DNA of 62,862 nt, filler included, from Choristocarpus tenellus KU-1152 (lineage: Eukaryota; Protista; Phaeophyceae), in NCBI GenBank assembly GCA_964200185.2. It is 11 parts of 11 records of this genome, joined end to end, with 100 filler letters (N's around TTAATTAATTAA, not from the genome) between each part and the next. Parts side by side here need not be neighbours in the genome. Positions count along the whole stretch, not along the records: positions 3,390 to 13,940 come from CAXNAD020002862.1; 10 more parts are not named here. The stretch is one strand, 5' to 3'. How positions within the stretch are numbered: the stretch's first letter is position 1; every line of letters starts with the position of its first letter. The position numbers were made by a program, and so were the translations under genes. A model generated the notes under the pieces. That model had not been told where the DNA came from. It was given only the letters and a program-made list of their open reading frames with translations, and did no database searches. Positions 3,390-13,940 of the stretch are shown here, one piece after another.

Positions 3390-3417
3390 CCCCCCCTCCC
3401 CCCAGATACTTTGACCC
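3390..3417. mobile_element. MITE family A terminus (poly-C + AGATACTTTGACCC), truncated by contig start
   Basis: The same terminus is seen at 55971-55994 and, reverse-complemented, at 62806-62830. Confidence 0.75.
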
Positions 3418-3493
3418 ATCACGTAGAACAACTCCCCCCTACCCACCTGATGAGACCGAAGTGGCATTTACGCTTGGAAGAACAGCAGCAATC

Positions 3494-3673
3494 AACCTCA
3501 CCCAAGAGGGGACTGGAGGTGTCAATTTCGCGCAGGACGGGGATGGAAGTATTGACCTCGCCCAGGAGAGGGCTAGAGGAGTCGACTTCGGATAGGATAA
3601 GGCTGGAGGTATCGACCTAGCTTACGCTGGGACTACAGATGTCGATCGCACCCAAGAGGGGAGTGGTGGGGAT
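3494..3673 (+). repeat. Degenerate 30-bp minisatellite, about 6 units
   Basis: Units start at 3494, 3524, 3554, 3584, 3614 and 3644 (e.g. GACCTCGCCCAGGAGAGGGCTAGAGGAGTC). They read as a 10-aa repeat (NLTQEGTGGV, NFAQDGDGSI, DLAQERARGV, DFG*DKAGGI) with one in-frame stop. Confidence 0.8.
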
Positions 3674-4137
3674 ATCGATCGAGAAGGATTGGTATTGAGG
3701 CTACTACATCAGAGGAGGATGCTGTAGTGATGATTGCGCTTCCCCCTGAGGGGGTTGAAGTGAATGCCATTGTCCCAGAGGGGATTGTAGGGGGGGAGGG
3801 ACCTACCCCAAAGATGCCACCTTGGGTCAACTAGTATGAATGCAACGAATGAATGGACGTGGGTGTTGAGGAACTGGGCGGAAGTAGAGCAATTACCATA
3901 ATCCTAGGGGGGACTGTTGAGGGGGAGGAGCTCGCTTCAGGTATGGAAACTGGTGATATATAACTCGCATCAACAGCAGGCATTGGTGGACCTGATGAGC
4001 TCGCCCAAGGTGGGGCTAGAGCATTTATCATGGCCCCATGGGGCCCAAGTGGTGAGATGCGACCTACTACAAAAGTGGATATCAACCAGATACATACGCA
4101 ACTCGGTCACTGCCATGAAGCGATGGTACGCAGGTAT

Positions 4138-4203
4138 GAGTGAAGGTATCTTATAGAGGGTACGAGGTTTGCCCCTGTTTGTCCATTTGGAGTTTGGCTT
4201 CCC
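4138..4203 (-). mobile_element. Family B (Sola2-like) transposon right end, with a different internal sequence
   Basis: GAGTGAAGGTATCTTATAGAGGGTACGAGGTTTGCCCCTGTTTGTCCATTTGG is the reverse complement of the right end of the copies at 27678-27929, 34286-34555 and 42840-43100. Confidence 0.8.
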
Positions 4204-4204
4204 A

Positions 4205-4880
4205 CAAAAATATATTCGTCATACAAAAGCATAGAGGTGTTCGACCCCAGAGCCGCTTGATTTCCCAGGGGCATCAAGTTAACCGAGCCCAACACCAACC
4301 TCCTGGTCTTCAAATATGTATGTTATCCTCCTTGTTTCGAGTTATGTTGTCATATACTTCTGTGTTGACATCAGCAGCACATACAGCCCTCTTTTCCCCT
4401 TACATAGTTATAAGTACTGACGTGTGGCAGATCGTTTTCGTCAGACACAGAACCTGGTACCTTCACCTTGAAACTTCAGTACCCATGAATTAATAAGATG
4501 AAAACACGAGGGAGGTTTAGTTTGCAGACCTGGAAATCAGCACGTTAAGACCTGCTTCCAAGAAAACAAGCACTGGCTGTCACAAGATACGATGGTCTAA
4601 GTTTCATGTGTATCGTCAATTACTACAACAGCACAACAATATTTTCCCTGTTGCATCGTCAAGTCGTCCTGCCAAGGTACCACCCCAGCATATTCCACAT
4701 CTTGATTGGAAAAGCGCGTGCTCTCTTGCAGCAGTAGAGTAGTGTGTGATGCTATATTGCAGACAAGAGCTCTACGGTTCTACCGTAACATGCAATACTT
4801 CCACAAGAGCTAGGCGATCCAAAAGCCCTCTCTTTTTGGATCAGACTGTGCAGGATAGTCAGGAAATGTCAATATACCAT
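4205..4880 (-). pseudogene. Decayed ubiquitin-specific protease (C19/USP)-like domain, intronless
   Basis: Across frameshifts and stops, motifs appear in USP order: FLTILHSLIQKE, SCLQ(Y), SCDSQC, LNLPRVFILLIH, LYVL, YIFEDQEV, SNTSMLLY. The His box is not recognisable. Confidence 0.5.
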
Positions 4881-5470
4881 GTGTATTGTCAACGTACATT
4901 GCAAATGTTAGCGTAAGAGAATGTCAAAAAACCGACCCATGGTGAGGGGTTGAACTGTCCTTAACTACCGACTCGGCAGAGTGCCAAGTGCCAAACGCAT
5001 CCCACAAGAACCTCAGACAATATCCTATAATCTTGACTTAGGACAGTTTCAATTCACACAACAAAAATGAAATGAACCTACAGGCAACAATGAAGAAATG
5101 ACGAATTTTGTACGTCTTTTGTAATGGTTGTCGACGACAATGGGATCTATCTATATTCTGTACGAAGTGCTCTATCAACAGCTTCTACGCATACTTCTTA
5201 TCTGTATTGAAGTATGGTAATTGGGGCACAAAAAATGTGTGCAACCACGACAAGAAAAGCTCGATCTCCACGTTTGAACATACGATGGATGATTTCCTTT
5301 GATACTGTCGTATATAATGCAAGAGATTTGCAATGCATGCTCCGATTATGGATTACTCAGTAAAAGTAGGTCGAAATACTTCACTGCTGTGAAACGTGCC
5401 TTCCACAGCATTTCAGGTAGCGGTGCAAGCTGCAGCAGAACCCAGTAGATGATGTGTTGCACCCATGCCA

Positions 5471-8400
5471 CTAGTAGTACCTGCTGTACCCTGGGAGTCC
5501 GCGTGGCACTATCTCTGGGACGTCTCTGGCAACTTCTACCCAGGTTACATCATCCACAGCACGGTACACCATTAGGCCGAGCTGGTGACCACGTTCTGGC
5601 ATGGACCACACCCAAGTCTTTAGGAATTTCGACTGATGACACCATTAACGACAAATCAAATATATTTGGTAGGTATTGGTGGTATTAGCAGTGTTGGTAT
5701 ATTGGTAACGGTGGTGAATTGATTGTGTTTTATATGCAAGCTTTTAACAGAAAAGTGACCCATAGGTTCAACTCTTATGCACGTAATGCCAATGCTGGAA
5801 TATCTCCCACAATGAAAAGATATCAATGTGAGAATTTCAATGATCGAGTAATGAGTCAAAGTAAATAGGAGAGGTACCAGAGTTGCATTTTAAGGATGCT
5901 GGCAAATATGTGCAAAATTCAGCATTAAAAAATGGGTATCGGACATTTTCCGAATTGTGTCGAAATGTTTCAAACAATAGAGAAACCAACCCTCAGTCCA
6001 ACTTAGACTTCATCTATAGAAATATAGGAGCATTACAAGAGATTTGAAAACTGACCTATAATGCAGAACAGTAAAAAATATATATGCAACTCGTTTACTT
6101 TGACTCAATCCCAATGCTTAAGCTTGACATTTCAAAGTAGAATATTGTCGAAAAGTGGACTCATTTGATGTTCTAGTTGATATTCATAGGAATATCAACA
6201 ATTGGTAGAGACCATCATCATAGCTAACAGTCAATATCCCACAAAGTATGCAAAATATATGTAAGAACCTGCTAGATGTCGAGCGAAATATAAAATTAAA
6301 AAAAGAAAAAACTGACAACAGCACCATTCTTTGTAGCTGCGATATAAAGTACTATTTTATGAAAAACAGGCAAACATTGTTTTCAGCACTATGTTGTCAC
6401 TGACCCTCTGCCCACGTATGCGAAGTGTATTTAGCACCCAGCCCACAAAGCTAGCCATGTCATCATAGGCCGTGTACTCCCAGCACTTGCGTGTGACATC
6501 CTTGGCCAATTGCACTGAGAAGAACTGGCACATGTACAGGGGTAGTGATGGGTTAGATTTGTAGTCGGCAGCTAGATTGCATTCCTGATCGCACTGTGGT
6601 TTAGGACGTCCTTCAAACACGCAATACTTGACTAGTTGCCTAGAAGTATGATTGAAGGCAGGTAGGGTCTGGTGCTCCATTACTCAAAGAGTATACGTGT
6701 AGGTGGTGGGTGGCTTCAACAACATGACTTCAAGCTCCTAGTGGGCAAGGGAAATATTGCTATGCTGTATTGGGTTAGTTAGAGAGCAATAGGGTATGAC
6801 CACACACAAAACCTTGGGTGTTGTCTGAACTTCTCATGCATGAAAAATAGCAAGTAGTACGTCTGTAACCAATTGAGCCAGTTGAAATTCCCTAATAAAC
6901 AATTGATACTATTCACATACTAATAGCTCCATATACCACGTTTTGTACTGGGAGTACATGAAGAGTTCGTCGACACGATCAGTCGACCGATCATTAAATT
7001 CAGTGTACCTTCAGGGTGGCTGTGCATGTTGGTCAACACAAAATGATGTACATAAGTACGTACAATTTACATGGTATGTGTTGAGCATTATACACAAGAC
7101 CCGAGGTTGAGTTGATTTATGACGTGCTTTGGCAGAGGACAGCATCCTGGGTTGTGTTTTAATATGTAGTATGGCATTAGTGTTACAAAAGGCCTGTGGT
7201 CTCTAATCCGTTGCCTGAGCTACTGGGACTCACAAGCGGAAGCACCCATTACTATATTCATATCCTGTGAGGTTTGTAATCGTTCACACTAACTACCCAT
7301 GAATCCCTCACTTACTTCGAGGTATTTGTCTTCAGTATCACAAGTAAGCACTGGACATCAATCAGCCAATACACGTGGTATATGATGCCATATATCAAAC
7401 ATACAAACAGAATGTTCTTAATACATAACAATATACTTATAATATTTACTCCAAGAATGGTGTCTGTAGTTCGTCAGCAACAACATTGACGCAAGTACAT
7501 AGTCAAAACACAAAATAAGAAGAGGGGCAATTCTGAGGTACTGATGAAGCAGGAAACAGAGACCACTAACTTTCGTGTACGAATGGGGTGTAGTAGCAAA
7601 TGCGACGGAGATTCTGGCCGGTAGAGTCCAAGTATTGAATTTACAACAATGCTTGGAGATTTTATTTTCAATTATCACTAGTGTACTCTTTATACTGAAC
7701 AAAAAGGAAGCTGGGCCTATTGAACACACAATCCTTTCATACCTGATCACTATTGAGCAACTCTAGTGCCGAACGTCTAACACATCTTGGAACCCTACCA
7801 TCTTACCTTCCTTGCGATGGGTGCTGAGTATGTGAACTCCTCGTTCTTCAGGGTCTCCAGAAGTCCTTTTCCAAAGGACATTATCTGTGACTCAAGGTCT
7901 GATAGTGCAATATTGTCAGACTGGAAACCTTTGTCCTTGCCAATGGAGATCGCGTTCACCATGGACTGTATATCTGCTGCATGCTGCATGTGCGCCGCAT
8001 GTTTGCTAGATGGTACGCTCATCTGATAATGAGAGATCAGACCAATGGTTGAAGGAATCAAGGATGAGTGGAGTGCAACATACCCTTCTGACCCGATGGT
8101 GAGGATGGAATTTGTTTCCGGTCGAGTTGGGTGCCACAATGCTTCAAAGTAGTACTGTCCCCGAAAAACGTAAGAGTATGTTGTGTGAGGACACCTTCAC
8201 CATTGACTTCACTCGCAGCTGCTATAGTCTATGGAACTGCTCTCCTCATGGAACTTAGCATGTGTAACATCAATATGTGCTTGAGCTGACTGTTGTAGTA
8301 GATGAGGCTACATGCATATCTCACTCCAAACTATTCATATTACTTTAGAAAGCGTAGCTTTTCGATTGTACTCTAGCAACAGTGTTTCACTGCTTTGGAG

Positions 8401-11400
8401 GGTAACTATATTTGACTTGCGGAATTTCCCTCATGGTCCAAACACTCTCTCCCCAACCCCGATGTACCCCACAATGGTACACAATAATGTTAAATATACA
8501 GCAGTCAGTAGTGCAAAAATACCCTGTATTATACCTTAGACTTCTCCGAGTGTGGTGATCCACAGCTAATCTAATCAGTAGTCAATTGAACAGGATGAGT
8601 AAGGGTATGTCGATTCTCCTAGCTTCTTCAAAGTAGCCCTAACGACGACAATCTACTCACCTCACCGGTCAAAAGGACACAAAATTCTCATGCGATTATA
8701 AAGGAAAACATGTCCATTCTTCCAGCCGATTATGCTTCTCCTTCTCTATAGTGCTCTATCCATTTCCCAAAGCCGCACATTCAAGACTATCCTTCTTTAC
8801 ATAAGGCGAACATCGTTTCAAAAGCAGACAATATTGGAGCTGGATATTGGTACATCTCTTCATAACTTTATCGTTTCTTTTCACCTGTCCAGGGAAAAAC
8901 TCTTCCACGGCAGGGAACAACGCCTTCTCCTTCTGGTTGACAAGAACACCATAGGACAAATTGACCTGGTTCCAAGATTCGACAACTTTGGCAATTGAGG
9001 CAGCGCCGCCAATCCCGGGTTTCATGACCACAGACAGCTTGAGGAGCTCGGTAACCGCAGCCCTGATGGCCTGTCAACGAATAGGCGAGAAAGGTGAGAG
9101 GTGGAAAGTGGGCGTTGGGTGAGCTGAGGAAGATATGTCAATATGCAGTGTTCTAATGATCGGACAATGATGAACACTAGTGATACATGAGGGCAGCGCC
9201 TGGAGGGGTCTGTGCAGGGTGTATCTACCACATGTGGTACCAGAGGCAGTATGGCCGGCGAGGTATCTAGGTGTGTCGTGTGTTAACACGTCAGGCATCT
9301 GGTTGATGGGACAGGTGGGGTCTGAAGTGCGACTGGAATTCTTCCAAAACTTCTAGACCGCCTTCACAAATACTGGTCTGGAGGAGCTATAGTCTTATTA
9401 GATTTACTGAGTGAGCAGATGCTGGAGATCATGTGGATTTAGAATAATCTAAAACACCCCCTTGATCTCTCTGTGACAACCTGTGGCACTCTGCAACCCT
9501 CTGTAGACTAGAGAAAATTCGTTATACAACGAGGCCCATTGGGCGGGGGAGTATGGTGGTCCAGAGTTCCTACATCACAAGCCTCTTGTTTTGTCCATGT
9601 GCACGGTTTGATTTGCTGAGGTCAGGCACTTATACTGAGCAAACATCTACCCCACCCGACTTGTGAGATCCCTATCTCCGCAACATATTGTTTTACTGCT
9701 TAAAGCTCTAGACTAAGCATATTGCGCATCGACCACATCCATTATTAGTTGCTTACAAAACAGGGTATTGTAGAGGCCTATGTACATGTTATTGACATAC
9801 TGAGTTCTTCATTAGGGTATAAATATTTCTGAGTCTCTGAAACAATCTGGGACTGTGGACTTGCATTTTTGTGTCCCATGCTACAGAGCGTGATCAGGAA
9901 CCAGTTGGCTGGTTGCACCTACCTCATGGGAGATCTTCATGAAGGACAGAGGGGACAACTTTGCATGGGGCACGAACAGATGTCTCGCCTTGAGGAGGCC
10001 CACTGTGGACATGGTGAACACCGCATTGGCCAGACATGCTGCTGACAACACAATGATGTAGATGACCTGAGTGTGTCAATGTCGAACCATAATTCAGGAC
10101 GGGTTTGGTAGGTTGTCATTTGGACGAAAGAATAGGATCATATATATCATACAGTGTCTCGAGCGGTCTTCATAGATTGGGATTGAAACAGACCAGGATT
10201 TGTATGTTTCTCTTTGAATAACTTTTGTTGTAGTACGAATATTATCCTGTAATGAAATCACCAGGCAGAAAAAAAAGTGAAAAATCAGTGGAGGGGGAGG
10301 GGGAGTGTATAGCATATTGGTGGTGAGTACATCAGGCCCGCACAACACCAATGTTGTTTCCATTTTCTCGTGCGTGACCAAAGTTGTTTCGTATTGAAAG
10401 AAGCACCAAACCTGCATCGCAAGGAAAGATAGAGGAGTCACAACAACGAACATTTCCCATTTTGTGTCAGGTATGGAGCTGCATTACCATCGCATACCTA
10501 GGCTACTCCACAAGCACTTCATACTTCGAAGTAGTAAGTCTTTGAATCAGAGGGATGAATTATTTCCCACCTGCATCGTGTCATACTTCGTGTGAGTGTA
10601 CGCTGTCACAGAAGCAGCTGCCAGGGCATCAAGGGGGAATGCAAAGACCCAATTGTTCATATTGAACTTGCCCTCGACAAAGAAGTTCAGTGGCCATACA
10701 CAGGCAGCAAGCACCAAGGCCAGGAAGAGGGCCGAGTCTGCACGAAACAAAAGTACAAAAAATTGTGGTTGTATGTGGAGAGCAAGGGAAGTAGGAACTG
10801 GGTTGGAGGGAGGGGCATTAGAATTCTGATACATCGACGAGATCATTGACCAGATACCTGCACTAACTTTGTGGGACAGATGGGAGGTTGCCTGCAAAAG
10901 ATGCTACCATCAACACACATTAGAACAATGGAGGAGTGGTGTATGTTCAGCTGGTATGCAGGTTCAAAAATAAGGACAATTTATTGAGTCATTGACTGAA
11001 AGTCAGATTGGATTTCCAGTTTAAACGTGTCTCTCGTATTCCGCCATCTGTACCCAACTTTGCAGTGTAACAATTACAACTCGATTATATTGTCTACACA
11101 TTCATGATCTGGGAGTTGGGTGTAGTAGTAGCAACTCGTAAGCTCCCCATTCACTACATCTTGTATGTATTAAAAATAATCACTTAGTGACAGTGCGGTG
11201 TCAGAAGTCTAAGTTTCCTCTCTCTATTTGATAGACATGCCCAAGCACCACATACCAAGTCATCACACTCAGTGGACACAACACATACTCTTTCACTGAG
11301 CTGCCCGATCAACAAGAGGCATCTTTCCGGTGATTGCAGACACACAAGTTTCATATATTCAAGTACTGAGTATCTTTGACTTTTCTACAAAACGACGAAC

Positions 11401-13494
11401 GCCCCCAAAAAGCACCCAGCTCAACTCCGGGCACCAACCACAATGCTGAAAAATATTACGTGGTCGTGTTTTGCATTACAAAATTCTCTGAACCAATGAA
11501 TCATTGTATAAATATGAACTAGGTTCTCGTTCGCTCATGTTTCACACCCAAAGAACGCACAGAATAGTAGTCGCTGTATATTGTTGAACCATTGAACTTC
11601 TTCCAGGGAGACATAGGCTAGCATCATAACTGCAGTAGGCGCTATCCAGATACCGTACGTAGATCTCATAGGCGTGTCTGCATGGTAGGTTGACACGGAC
11701 TAGCATGAACAATATACACAGGAGGGAAGCAGCATCGGTCATGGGATGAGGGAGACATCGAGAAGATATTTGTTTTGTTTTGGGATCACCAGCACTTTGA
11801 CTCATAAGGAGACTCATCTGGGTGGTTTCATAAACATAGAGTTAGAACTCTACATCTGACTTAAATGTGCTATATACGTTACATGCGAACTTGGCTGAAA
11901 CAACCTCATCAGGTTTCCAATATCGAGAGGGTAGTAGATTTGCAAGGTGAACATGTCCCATTGTTCAATTGTCATATGAACTACTTCGAAGTACATGTGA
12001 ACATTGAATGTTAACTTTTTTTTATTAGGGTCCGAATATTTATGTTTCAACTTGTGTGGTCTACTTGTTCCACTACATCTCAAACTCGGCATGACTCCGC
12101 CCTTCAAGGCACTGCAACAATCGTTGACATTATCTTGAAGTAAGAGAAAATGCCTGTTTAGATAAAAGATCATACACGAAACCTTCATATGCAATATTAG
12201 AACAATTGGAGTACTATCACCACCTCGATGAACTTAAGTCCACAATATTCTCGATTGCTTATCAATAGCCGTGTTCTAATTGTTCCCAAGCGTGATGTTG
12301 GACTATATATGTGGGCAATACTGACTTCACTTCTGTGGAGTAGGGACACGCAAATTAGACGTTTACCAAAATAACTGAGGTTGAGATGCCATATTTTTTG
12401 TACCAGTGCTAAGTCAGAATCACAACTCTGTTGCTCCAACCAGGACCAGATACAGAAACCAAATCTAACGCACAGTCACCCTTCTGCTAGTCAAAGTTGG
12501 GTTTTCTTGATAACGTGTACTCAAGGGAGCTTTACCTTCAGAAATGTGGCTGGCCAAAGGGCGAGGTACATGATAGCCCCAACCGAGAGTACAAACCATC
12601 CCCACTCGTAGTAGTCCTCATCCACAGATCTCGCTACCATCGCGCCAATCATGTTCCCCACTGGCATCAACATCCATAACGGGTTCATGAGATCATCATG
12701 GTTGGGCAAGGCCACCCACCTGTAGCGGGTGGAACAGGACAGACAAGGGATAGCATAACATGGAGAACGAGTAGGTTGTGCTACAAAGCATTAATACTCA
12801 GTGTAATCACTCGATGTGTTCTAAGCAGGGGGGGGCAAACTCTCGAGTACTATACGCATCATATATTCCAAAAGAATCGCACCCTTCTGTGATTTTTAAT
12901 CTCACAAACCCATCTTATTCACAGCAGTAGTTCCTAGAATTACATATTCTATGCCCAATCAAAGCATATTAGGGCACCCCTCCATGAAGTTCACACACAC
13001 CCCAGACCTGAGAGGGTTAGCACTTCATGGTAAAAATGAGATTGCTACTATGCAAATTTCGGTATTGTTCCGCCATCGAAGCCCTCAAATCCTTTGTGGA
13101 TAACTTGTACTGAATACTAAACGCGAGGTACATGGAGTGCAGATCAAAGTCGACGTTGCGAAGACTCTAACCCTGACCAAATGATGGTGCTGTAATGCCC
13201 CTGAACAAAAGGGAATGCCAAGTACATCATAATTGGTAGTCCAAACTATAAACTCTAACTTAAATGTTAGATGGAGTGCCTAGCCTCCTTCCTATGGTCT
13301 GATCCTCACCTTGCCACCACGAGTATGCTAACGATAACAAGGGGAGCAGATCCTATCCAGTATAGGACCTTGGCCAGGTCAGAAGAGTGTGAATTACCGG
13401 CCCATTCCATACAGAGTCTGGACATTAGCATGAAGTTGATAAGGGGTAGGGCAAACTGGTTGCGGGAGTTGAAGTGCACCCATTCCTTCTTCAC
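5471..13494 (-). CDS. SLAC1/TehA (TDT) family anion channel with C-terminal hemerythrin-like (HHE) domain, 5'-partial, 9 exons, 500 aa
   Basis: Exons are 13310-13494, 12536-12719, 11561-11699, 10571-10737, 9923-10066, 8885-9070, 7807-8022, 6405-6524 and 5471-5632. All are GT-AG and phase-consistent, totalling 1503 nt with a TAG stop. Channel motifs: EWVHFNSRNQFALP, NPLWMLMPVGNMIGA, YGIWIAPTAV, KFNMNNWVFAFPL. The soluble tail reads PLSFMKISHEAIR ... KEKALFP ... KH ... TLKNEE...PIARK ... WSMPERGHQLG ... RYY*. Confidence 0.9.
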
Positions 13495-13699
13495 CTGGCA
13501 GGCCACGTAGTGGTTTACAGGGAAGATTATCATACATGATAAGATCAGGAAGTTGAAGATAGAAGAAGAAATATCACGTCATAGCAAAAATACATACTCA
13601 AGTGGTTTCCAAGAAAAGGGTATACAATCGCAAGAAGGCAAGAGGAAAAGGGACTGAACCGATCAACAATGGAGTTTCTGTGTAATTTACCTTGGCACA

Positions 13700-13940
13700 G
13701 GAAAGTCATTGGAGACCTGGTCCACTTGGAGACTGTCATTGATAAGCCACCCTGGTGGAAAGGGTTTTTACCAGATTACGACAAGGGACAACGAGATTGC
13801 TGAAACACCCAACACCATCTCGGGGGAGGTAGTGCCACCGGCACATGCCATGCATATCAAGAACAGCAAGGCGTTATAGCTCCTGATCATTCAAGCAACA
13901 AAGGGATTGGCATCGGCAATCGTTGCACGCTACGAAAACG
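13700..13940 (+). mobile_element. Decayed Ty1/Copia gag-like fragment in an intron of the SLAC1-like gene, truncated by contig end
   Basis: Colinear, high-similarity match to 62118-62357. Confidence 0.65.

Follow-up and report, generated by a model that had tools for sequence, protein, structure and literature searches.

The locus at positions 5471-13494 of the window, the whole 62,862-nucleotide stretch of Choristocarpus tenellus KU-1152 DNA analysed here, raises the question of whether a SLAC1/TDT-type membrane channel is fused to a cytosolic hemerythrin-like domain, and whether such a domain could serve as a built-in iron or redox sensor. To our knowledge, iron sensing of marine algae is poorly known, and if the intact form of this protein is gated by iron or redox state, the flux of anions or organic acids in these organisms would be directly tied to the sensing of metal.

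Gene structure of the locus

Nine minus-strand exons within 5471-13494 add up to 1503 nt, or 500 codons and a TAG stop, and a codon-by-codon comparison with residues 2-501 of the predicted protein P0001 shows 0 mismatches. A local check of exon phases and codons finds GT-AG borders at all eight introns, with phases 2,0,1,0,0,0,0,0. In the alignment, the columns and phases of all eight are common to Ascophyllum P0005, Scytosiphon P0008 and Sphacelaria P0004, and 7/8 positions are shared with Ascophyllum P0012. Because intron positions and phases agree with those of homologues, the nine-exon model lies far above chance, and as the gene model of the C. tenellus locus, predicted from genomic DNA, it can be regarded as practically certain. 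The original prediction of nine phase-consistent exons in one 500-aa frame is thus borne out by the P0001 match, the splice sites and the conserved introns. Its reading as a complete gene is corrected: the piece comprises the 3' nine of about 22 exons of a gene cut by a contig edge. Homology searches used the exons singly and then P0001, whose residues 2-501 are the nine-exon frame; a search for RNA runs yielded none containing the gene, and the contigs of two DNA-like runs, probably from the source study, contain no splice joints.

The first exon of the piece (13310..13494, 14th of about 22 by homology) encodes TM3-TM4 of the SLAC1/TDT domain, and its acceptor belongs to a phase-0 intron kept in homologues. 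It is followed by 12536..12719 (TM5-TM6, matching Pfam SLAC1 by itself with E 5.8e-7), 11561..11699 (TM7) and 10571..10737 (TM8-TM9, with the Phe204 codon at 10639-10637). The domain-joining exon, 9923..10066, encodes TM10, a linker and the start of hemerythrin helix 1 with the ligand His273 (9928-9926). Helices 1-2 lie in 8885..9070, which includes Leu317 (8944-8942) and Lys321 (8932-8930), and helices 3-4 in 7807..8022, with His344 (8001-7999), Thr393 (7854-7852) and Glu397 (7842-7840). Exon 6405..6524 encodes the first half of a helical extension, homologous to the post-hemerythrin helices of an HRZ/BRUTUS-like protein, and the last exon (5471..5632) the family-specific C-terminal helices with their PRG-x-x-G..RRY end and the stop TAG at 5473-5471.

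Segment 11062..13129 is duplicated on contig G000:C10709, where a 91% identical copy carrying two exons has a premature TGA and is a pseudogenic fragment. A dispersed, non-exonic repeat with about 40 scored copies occupies 13696..13940, within the upstream intron at the contig break; a hydrophobic ORF inside it (13890-13770) was rejected as TM1-2, the exons of which sit on contig C8378. Also set aside were ORF 6680-6360, which is mostly intron and exonic only at 6524-6405, and P0002 as a relative, a repetitive chance match.

A predicted four-domain protein

Exons of the 5' part were located on contigs G000:C8378 and G000:C11345, where they stop at the intron positions of homologues; comparison of intron positions shows that the last 5' exon found ends exactly before the first exon of the piece (13310..13494). 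These exons encode a glutaredoxin (CPFC) and a DUF4395 domain (CxGC), both with intact motifs, as well as TM1-2. Contigs C11345, C8378 and C2862 were joined by collinearity alone, without overlap, and two of the about 22 exons were not found among C. tenellus contigs. From the 5' exons on the two other contigs, therefore, the full protein is predicted to consist of four domains, namely glutaredoxin, DUF4395, SLAC1/TDT channel and BRUTUS/HRZ-type hemerythrin, followed by a conserved helical tail. The order of channel and then tail proposed earlier stands, whereas the N-terminal glutaredoxin and DUF4395, lying on other contigs, had been missed. With this arrangement DUF4395 gains a first context, its conserved CxGC adjoining a glutaredoxin.

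The full four-domain architecture is present in P0007-P0012 and in non-brown-algal contigs, and occurs across algae. Brown-algal family members are 43-51% identical to the window's protein. A cluster in the ESM Atlas, with 59 proteins from eukaryotes among which Chlorophyta are the commonest group, provides a lead only (score 0.80). A pattern scan of limited sensitivity found no relative in GTDB genomes. No CPFC exon was found within 10 kb upstream of Ascophyllum P0005, the intron being 26 kb in its paralogue. A single copy of the hemerythrin of this fusion family was found in the C. tenellus assembly.

The membrane domain

The assignment of the membrane part to the SLAC1/TDT family was confirmed by a Pfam SLAC1 (PF03595) match over residues 2-244 (81.7 bits against a cut-off of 27.9, E 7e-23, profile positions 62-330); run exon by exon, Pfam detects SLAC1 in two exons, and the tail exons remain without a match. 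The family profile matches SLAH3 (E 8e-20), SLAC1 (E 6e-18) and TehA (E 3e-15), and TM3-TM10 align helix by helix with SLAC1/SLAH and TehA. Phe204 on TM9 aligns with SLAC1 F450, the pore-gate phenylalanine and counterpart of TehA F262. Of the ten helices predicted for the domain, eight long membrane-region ones are modelled with modest confidence in the window's part, TM1-2 being on C8378 and linked by collinearity; the whole-chain model (pTM 0.49) is of low quality in its membrane region. The partial protein misses the NCBIfam cut-offs for the TehA equivalog (54 against 342 bits) and bacterial tdt (58.5 against 237 bits), and full-length P0012 also falls under them. Conduction of anions or small organic acids, as in SLAC1/SLAH/Mae1, is probable for this domain. 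The C. tenellus genome has two further, separate genes, on C1932 and C1886, that are more like SLAH.

A hemerythrin fold with a degenerate iron site

The segment after the last membrane helix (exon 9923-10066) has the sequence quoted in the original prediction, which read it as a four-helix HHE pattern. The model of the tail (pLDDT 87, pTM 0.85) supports this fold: its best four structural matches are HHE hemerythrins with Z 13.5-16.9 (3cax, 16.9; 2p0n, 14.7; FBXL5, 13.5; an Rv2633c homologue, 13.5), it superposes on FBXL5 with 2.9 Å over 151 residues, and an Atlas HHE cluster matches it over residues 3-236 (TM 0.75). Foldseek, with whole-chain and tail models, gave no match at E up to 0.001. 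Among aligned family tails, 18/21 match Pfam Hemerythrin (PF01814) with E values no higher than 0.1, the best being 4e-13. The family tail profile matches YtfE, ScdA and FBXL5, and it aligns over 177 columns with an HRZ-like protein of a fern at 95% probability. PF01814 is silent on P0001; the exon-wise blank is uninformative, because the whole genome searched exon by exon also gives zero matches. The hydrophobic core is kept in 34/38 columns of the Choristocarpus bundle. We are therefore highly confident that the tail is an HHE hemerythrin-type four-helix bundle, although its motif is degenerate.

The di-iron motif H-HxxxE-H-HxxxE is complete in 14/19 family members, and the six ligands are invariant in 8/8 non-brown-algal members. 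At these positions P0001 has H273, L317, K321, H344, T393 and E397, so that 3/6 are kept, with His replaced by Leu317, the bridging Glu by Lys321 and His by Thr393; the DNA-run contigs show no differences at the ligand codons. Four more brown-algal copies have a similarly disarmed hemerythrin, and a single origin of the loss, recovered in 41% of bootstrap trees, is neither established nor rejected (p-AU 0.45). In BTSL2, a central Glu-to-Ala change abolishes the di-iron centre, and the incomplete H2 hemerythrin domain binds no iron (PMC12022348). The Choristocarpus copy very probably lacks a di-iron centre. A built-in iron or redox module remains plausible for the family, because most homologues keep the full motif, but with three of six ligands lost in Choristocarpus the sensor idea suits the family and not this copy; a hemerythrin fold in this fusion family does not imply sensing.

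The His and Glu residues left around the site (H273, E322, H344, H347, E397 and E398) suggest another reading, in which the Choristocarpus copy would sense a metal (Fe, Zn or Cu) through a remodelled single-metal site made of His273, His344, His347, Glu322, Glu397 and Tyr314. His273 and Glu397/398 are indeed retained, both helix-3 histidines are kept where other disarmed copies have Arg, and the transcript of the Ectocarpus homologue Esi0050_0061, named glutaredoxin/malate transporter fusion protein, is copper-induced (PMC4108028). However, the histidines of the two HxxxE motifs are now Leu and Thr, Lys stands at the bridging position, and divergence is greatest in helices 2-3 (19-21% identity to intact copies), which makes such a site unlikely.

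Proposed coupling of channel and cytosolic modules

Taken as a whole, the locus seems best explained, with somewhat better than even confidence, as encoding a four-domain channel protein whose hemerythrin is metal-free in Choristocarpus. In typical members, the thiol pair of glutaredoxin CPFC and DUF4395 CxGC and the di-iron hemerythrin would constitute two cytosolic modules that may replace the kinase-controlled tails of plant channels, channel opening being putatively coupled to redox or iron state via the conserved C-terminal helices; gating of the channel by the tail is, in our estimate, an evenly balanced proposition. The Choristocarpus domain would be a metal-free pseudo-hemerythrin, in which Lys321 probably occupies the vacated site beside Glu397. 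Its bundle would keep its fold and serve the tail as a scaffold, while channel opening would no longer be coupled to iron, with thiol redox as the likely remaining input. A more tentative extension is that a thiol relay of glutaredoxin and DUF4395, together with the di-iron hemerythrin fused to it, directly gates the algal SLAC1-type channel, a kinase-free form of iron/redox gating. Brown algae would possess alongside it metal-free paralogues with Lys for the bridging Glu, this gene being one, which would either be channels locked in one state or modify mixed trimers as subunits. The armed and disarmed paralogues of one species, Ascophyllum P0012 and P0005, form a natural pair that makes the sensing question directly testable.

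The family might instead be a heavy-metal detoxification unit, as suggested for Esi0050_0061, in which glutaredoxin reduces metal-glutathione adducts, the TDT domain exports metal-organic-acid complexes and the hemerythrin is a losable accessory buffer. Copper-specific up-regulation and the authors' own proposal (PMC4108028) speak for it, as would repeated loss of iron ligands with the channel kept. Yet the support is a transcript response only, and because conservation along the protein is highest at the end of the tail (77% identity to intact copies in the last exon) and the non-brown-algal ligands are invariant, a structural or gating contact suits better than a dispensable buffer; we consider this alternative improbable.

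Selection on the disarmed domain

The reading of a folded, metal-free domain also has to be weighed against decay of the hemerythrin, or of the whole gene, under relaxed selection in Choristocarpus. The Choristocarpus branch is the longest among brown algae (0.89), and its bundle has the highest dN (0.7-0.8, against 0.4 in the membrane part, with dS saturated). Against decay, the frame is open and splice sites are canonical across nine exons, core hydrophobic columns and the last exon are conserved, synonymous difference exceeds nonsynonymous in every segment, and the dead C10709 fragment already has a stop at only 9% divergence. Decay is thus a distinctly poor prospect. In the Sphacelaria paralogues, the ligand-less domains show dN 0.07 and dS 0.54, and the disarmed Sphacelaria and Ascophyllum copies are under purifying selection. 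That channel exons and tail exons form two genes has next to no chance of being right, and their union in one gene, as first proposed, is upheld, since exon 10066-9923 alone encodes TM10 and the first hemerythrin ligand, the introns are conserved in homologous genes, and homologues on contigs that resemble transcripts (L033, L037, L038, L041, L043 and L044) each have one open frame free of introns.

Comparison with known systems

A literature search found no paper on a hemerythrin-bearing SLAC1/TDT protein and no functional study of the architecture, which is already half-annotated as the Ectocarpus siliculosus glutaredoxin/malate transporter fusion protein. The Ectocarpus protein CBJ26922.1 belongs to the same family, has the same domain order and is 48% identical over the window's protein, but retains 6/6 hemerythrin ligands; the InterPro list for Esi0050_0061 contains glutaredoxin and transporter domains only, without hemerythrin (PMC4108028).

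BRUTUS/HRZ and FBXL5 share the fold, and intact family members have the same H-HxxxE-H-HxxxE motif; the post-bundle helices also align with those of an HRZ-like protein. The output is a ubiquitin ligase there and a predicted membrane channel here, and BRUTUS/HRZ has three hemerythrin domains whereas this protein has one, without the motif in the Choristocarpus copy. Arabidopsis BTSL2 H2 provides a precedent for a folded, iron-free hemerythrin with an incomplete motif (PMC12022348), but adjoins two intact domains in its chain, while the Choristocarpus domain is the sole hemerythrin of its own.

Compared with plant SLAC1/SLAH and TehA, the equivalents of the gate Phe450 and of His260 are kept, whereas the position of SLAC1 Phe276 is Leu. 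The plant channels have phosphorylated tails; the protein described here is predicted to have folded cytosolic domains at both ends, together with DUF4395.

The hemerythrin-like tail and the loss of its iron site

The Choristocarpus tenellus protein P0001, recorded at NCBI as a partial protein of 501 aa from this brown alga, belongs to a family of fusion proteins whose brown-algal homologues (866–938 aa) show the domain order glutaredoxin, DUF4395, SLAC1, hemerythrin. The predicted structure of its tail (residues 258–501; pLDDT 87, pTM 0.85) has four long helices and, after them, a small helical subdomain. In a comparison with 48,161 chains, its best four structural matches are all HHE hemerythrins (3cax, Z 16.9; 2p0n, 14.7; FBXL5, 13.5; an Rv2633c homologue, 13.5), with the caveat that helical bundles reach high Z scores by chance. 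Sequence comparisons agree: PF01814 matches 18 of the 21 family tails, a tail profile search finds YtfE, ScdA and FBXL5, and the profile's match to an HRZ-like protein of a fern (probability 95%) spans 177 columns, post-bundle helices included. In the ESM Atlas, a cluster of stand-alone 243-aa HHE proteins from Bacteroidota covers nearly the whole tail with its extension (TM 0.75) and is a candidate source or model of the domain; bundle and extension therefore form a single inherited unit.

The complete di-iron motif H-HxxxE-H-HxxxE is found in 14 of 19 aligned family members, including all eight outside the brown-algal clade. In P0001, the six ligand positions are occupied by His273, Leu317, Lys321, His344, Thr393 and Glu397, so that neither HxxxE histidine remains and the first Glu is substituted as well. 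In Arabidopsis BTSL2, replacement of the central Glu by Ala abolishes the di-iron centre, and iron does not bind to a subdomain whose motif is incomplete (PMC12022348). Given three replaced ligands and this precedent, a di-iron centre in P0001 is unlikely. A remodelled single-metal site, for which His273, His344 and Glu397 would remain, is improbable. The original prediction of a hemerythrin-like bundle is thus borne out, and its suggested role as an iron, O2 or NO sensor fits the family, where the full motif prevails, but probably not for the C. tenellus copy.

The Glu-to-Lys replacement recurs in two Sphacelaria copies and in one Ascophyllum copy, the latter genus having one intact and one disarmed paralogue. 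Transcript P0006/P0017 (Logan SRR32182497) has Gln in place of the first hemerythrin Glu and Lys in place of the second; its glutaredoxin CPFC and second DUF4395 cysteine are gone too, so that all redox-active residues were apparently lost together and independently. A ligand loss shared by Choristocarpus and the Sphacelaria/Ascophyllum clade is neither supported nor rejected by the tree (41% of bootstrap trees; p-AU 0.45). Where an intron follows the first hemerythrin His, its donor is GC in the disarmed Ascophyllum P0005 and Sphacelaria P0004 and GT in Choristocarpus and the intact copies, which supports grouping P0005 with P0004, not adding Choristocarpus. The fragmentary C. tenellus assembly yielded this disarmed tail and no further family tail.

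Distribution and annotation of the fusion

Relatives occur at 13 metagenome loci, several being a single open frame with all four domains, and 59 eukaryotic proteins clustered in the ESM Atlas, with Chlorophyta the commonest source, offer a lead to the same domain set; no relative came up when GTDB genomes were scanned by pattern. The Ectocarpus member, annotated 'glutaredoxin/malate transporter fusion protein', is reported to be copper-induced and has been proposed to export copper-organic-acid adducts, with a domain list that omits hemerythrin (PMC4108028). A metal-detoxification exporter with hemerythrin as an accessory would fit this copper response, and we give it a slim chance. The literature searched, with most subscription journals outside its reach, held no description of a SLAC1/TDT–hemerythrin fusion. 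The four-domain architecture already lies in databases, half-annotated but apparently unstudied; what the present locus adds is a recurrent, conserved pseudo-hemerythrin form.

Conservation of the disarmed domain

Of the hydrophobic core columns, P0001 retains 34 of the bundle's 38 and 36 of the extension's 37. Its identity to intact copies is 77% in the last exon, 54% in the channel and 19–21% in helices 2–3. For the ligand-less bundle, dN is 0.07 and dS 0.54 between Sphacelaria paralogues, and 0.30 and 1.30 between Sphacelaria and Ascophyllum. The disarmed domain is maintained. Since the Choristocarpus bundle has a higher dN (0.7–0.8) and a saturated dS, constraint on it is relaxed, though its complete loss is not demonstrated. 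Decay, which this dN would favour and the retained core would not, is very unlikely.

Structure of the gene

Contig C2862, which in its entirety forms window positions 3390–13940, comes from an assembly of 164 Mb in 27,310 contigs. P0001 was retrieved by a single-exon search and served as query in subsequent ones, exons being otherwise searched individually. It maps to nine minus-strand exons (13494–13310, 12719–12536, 11699–11561, 10737–10571, 10066–9923, 9070–8885, 8022–7807, 6524–6405 and 5632–5471), which sum to 1503 nt, or 500 codons and a TAG, without a mismatch to residues 2–501; residue 1 is the acceptor CAG translated in frame. Each of the eight introns is GT-AG; their alignment columns and phases recur in P0005, P0004 and the Scytosiphon P0008, and Ascophyllum P0012 shares seven. 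This conservation is the chief independent support for the nine-exon model, and the 500-aa frame first proposed is confirmed; that channel and tail belong to two genes can be all but dismissed. A public DNA-like run, possibly of the source sample, supplies a contig that covers 7800–11117 without any difference, which clears the key codons of assembly error.

The gene extends past contig C2862. On contig C8378, seven exons encode the second half of DUF4395, the linker and TM1-2, the last stopping at the residue that directly precedes the first exon on C2862; on C11345, four exons encode a fusion-type glutaredoxin with CPFC intact. Their donor sites coincide with intron positions of homologues. 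As the three contigs share no overlapping sequence and two exons escaped detection, the link to C2862 is inferred. The DUF4395 terminal motif FCxGC (C8378, 4618–4470), kept in nearly all members, adjoins the CPFC glutaredoxin and might form a thiol relay or metal site in this domain of unknown function. The intron directly after the CPFC exon spans 26 kb in P0012, compared with 0.2–0.9 kb for the others.

Dispersed repeats occupy the contig end (13696–13940), the last intron (5852–6107; ~255 bp, at least 38 copies elsewhere, 75–80% identity) and, downstream of the gene, positions 3416–4204, where a ~730-bp element with short low-complexity ORFs and copies 77–91% identical on many contigs is likely the relic of a transposon. 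Contig C10709 (1352–3426) carries a 2.08-kb duplicate of 11062–13129, 91% identical, with two exons and their introns; splice sites are intact, a Trp has become TGA in the first exon, and both DNA-like runs contain it. It is an isolated gene fragment rather than a second gene.

The membrane domain and a proposed mechanism

Pfam SLAC1 matches residues 2–244 of P0001 (E 7e-23), and family profiles align without large gaps to SLAH3 (8e-20), SLAC1 (6e-18) and TehA (3e-15). By sequence, the domain is a member of the TDT superfamily but no TehA equivalog. Two further SLAC1-family genes of C. tenellus, on C1932 and C1886, have long exons and appear to resemble plant SLAC1/SLAH more closely than they do the fusion family.

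This anatomy points, as the most likely reading overall, to an anion or organic-acid channel with cytosolic modules in place of the kinase-controlled tails of plant SLAC1, the bundle here being metal-free. In members with an intact motif, the gate would be set, via the conserved C-terminal helices, by whether the hemerythrin is iron-loaded or oxidized and by the state of the thiols in glutaredoxin and DUF4395. In the C. tenellus copy the bundle would be a metal-free scaffold, perhaps locked in one state by Lys321 beside Glu397, and regulation, if any, would be left to the thiol modules. Compared with SLAC1, Phe204 of P0001 aligns with Phe450, the residue that gates the pore, and His8 with His260, whereas the position of Phe276 is a Leu.
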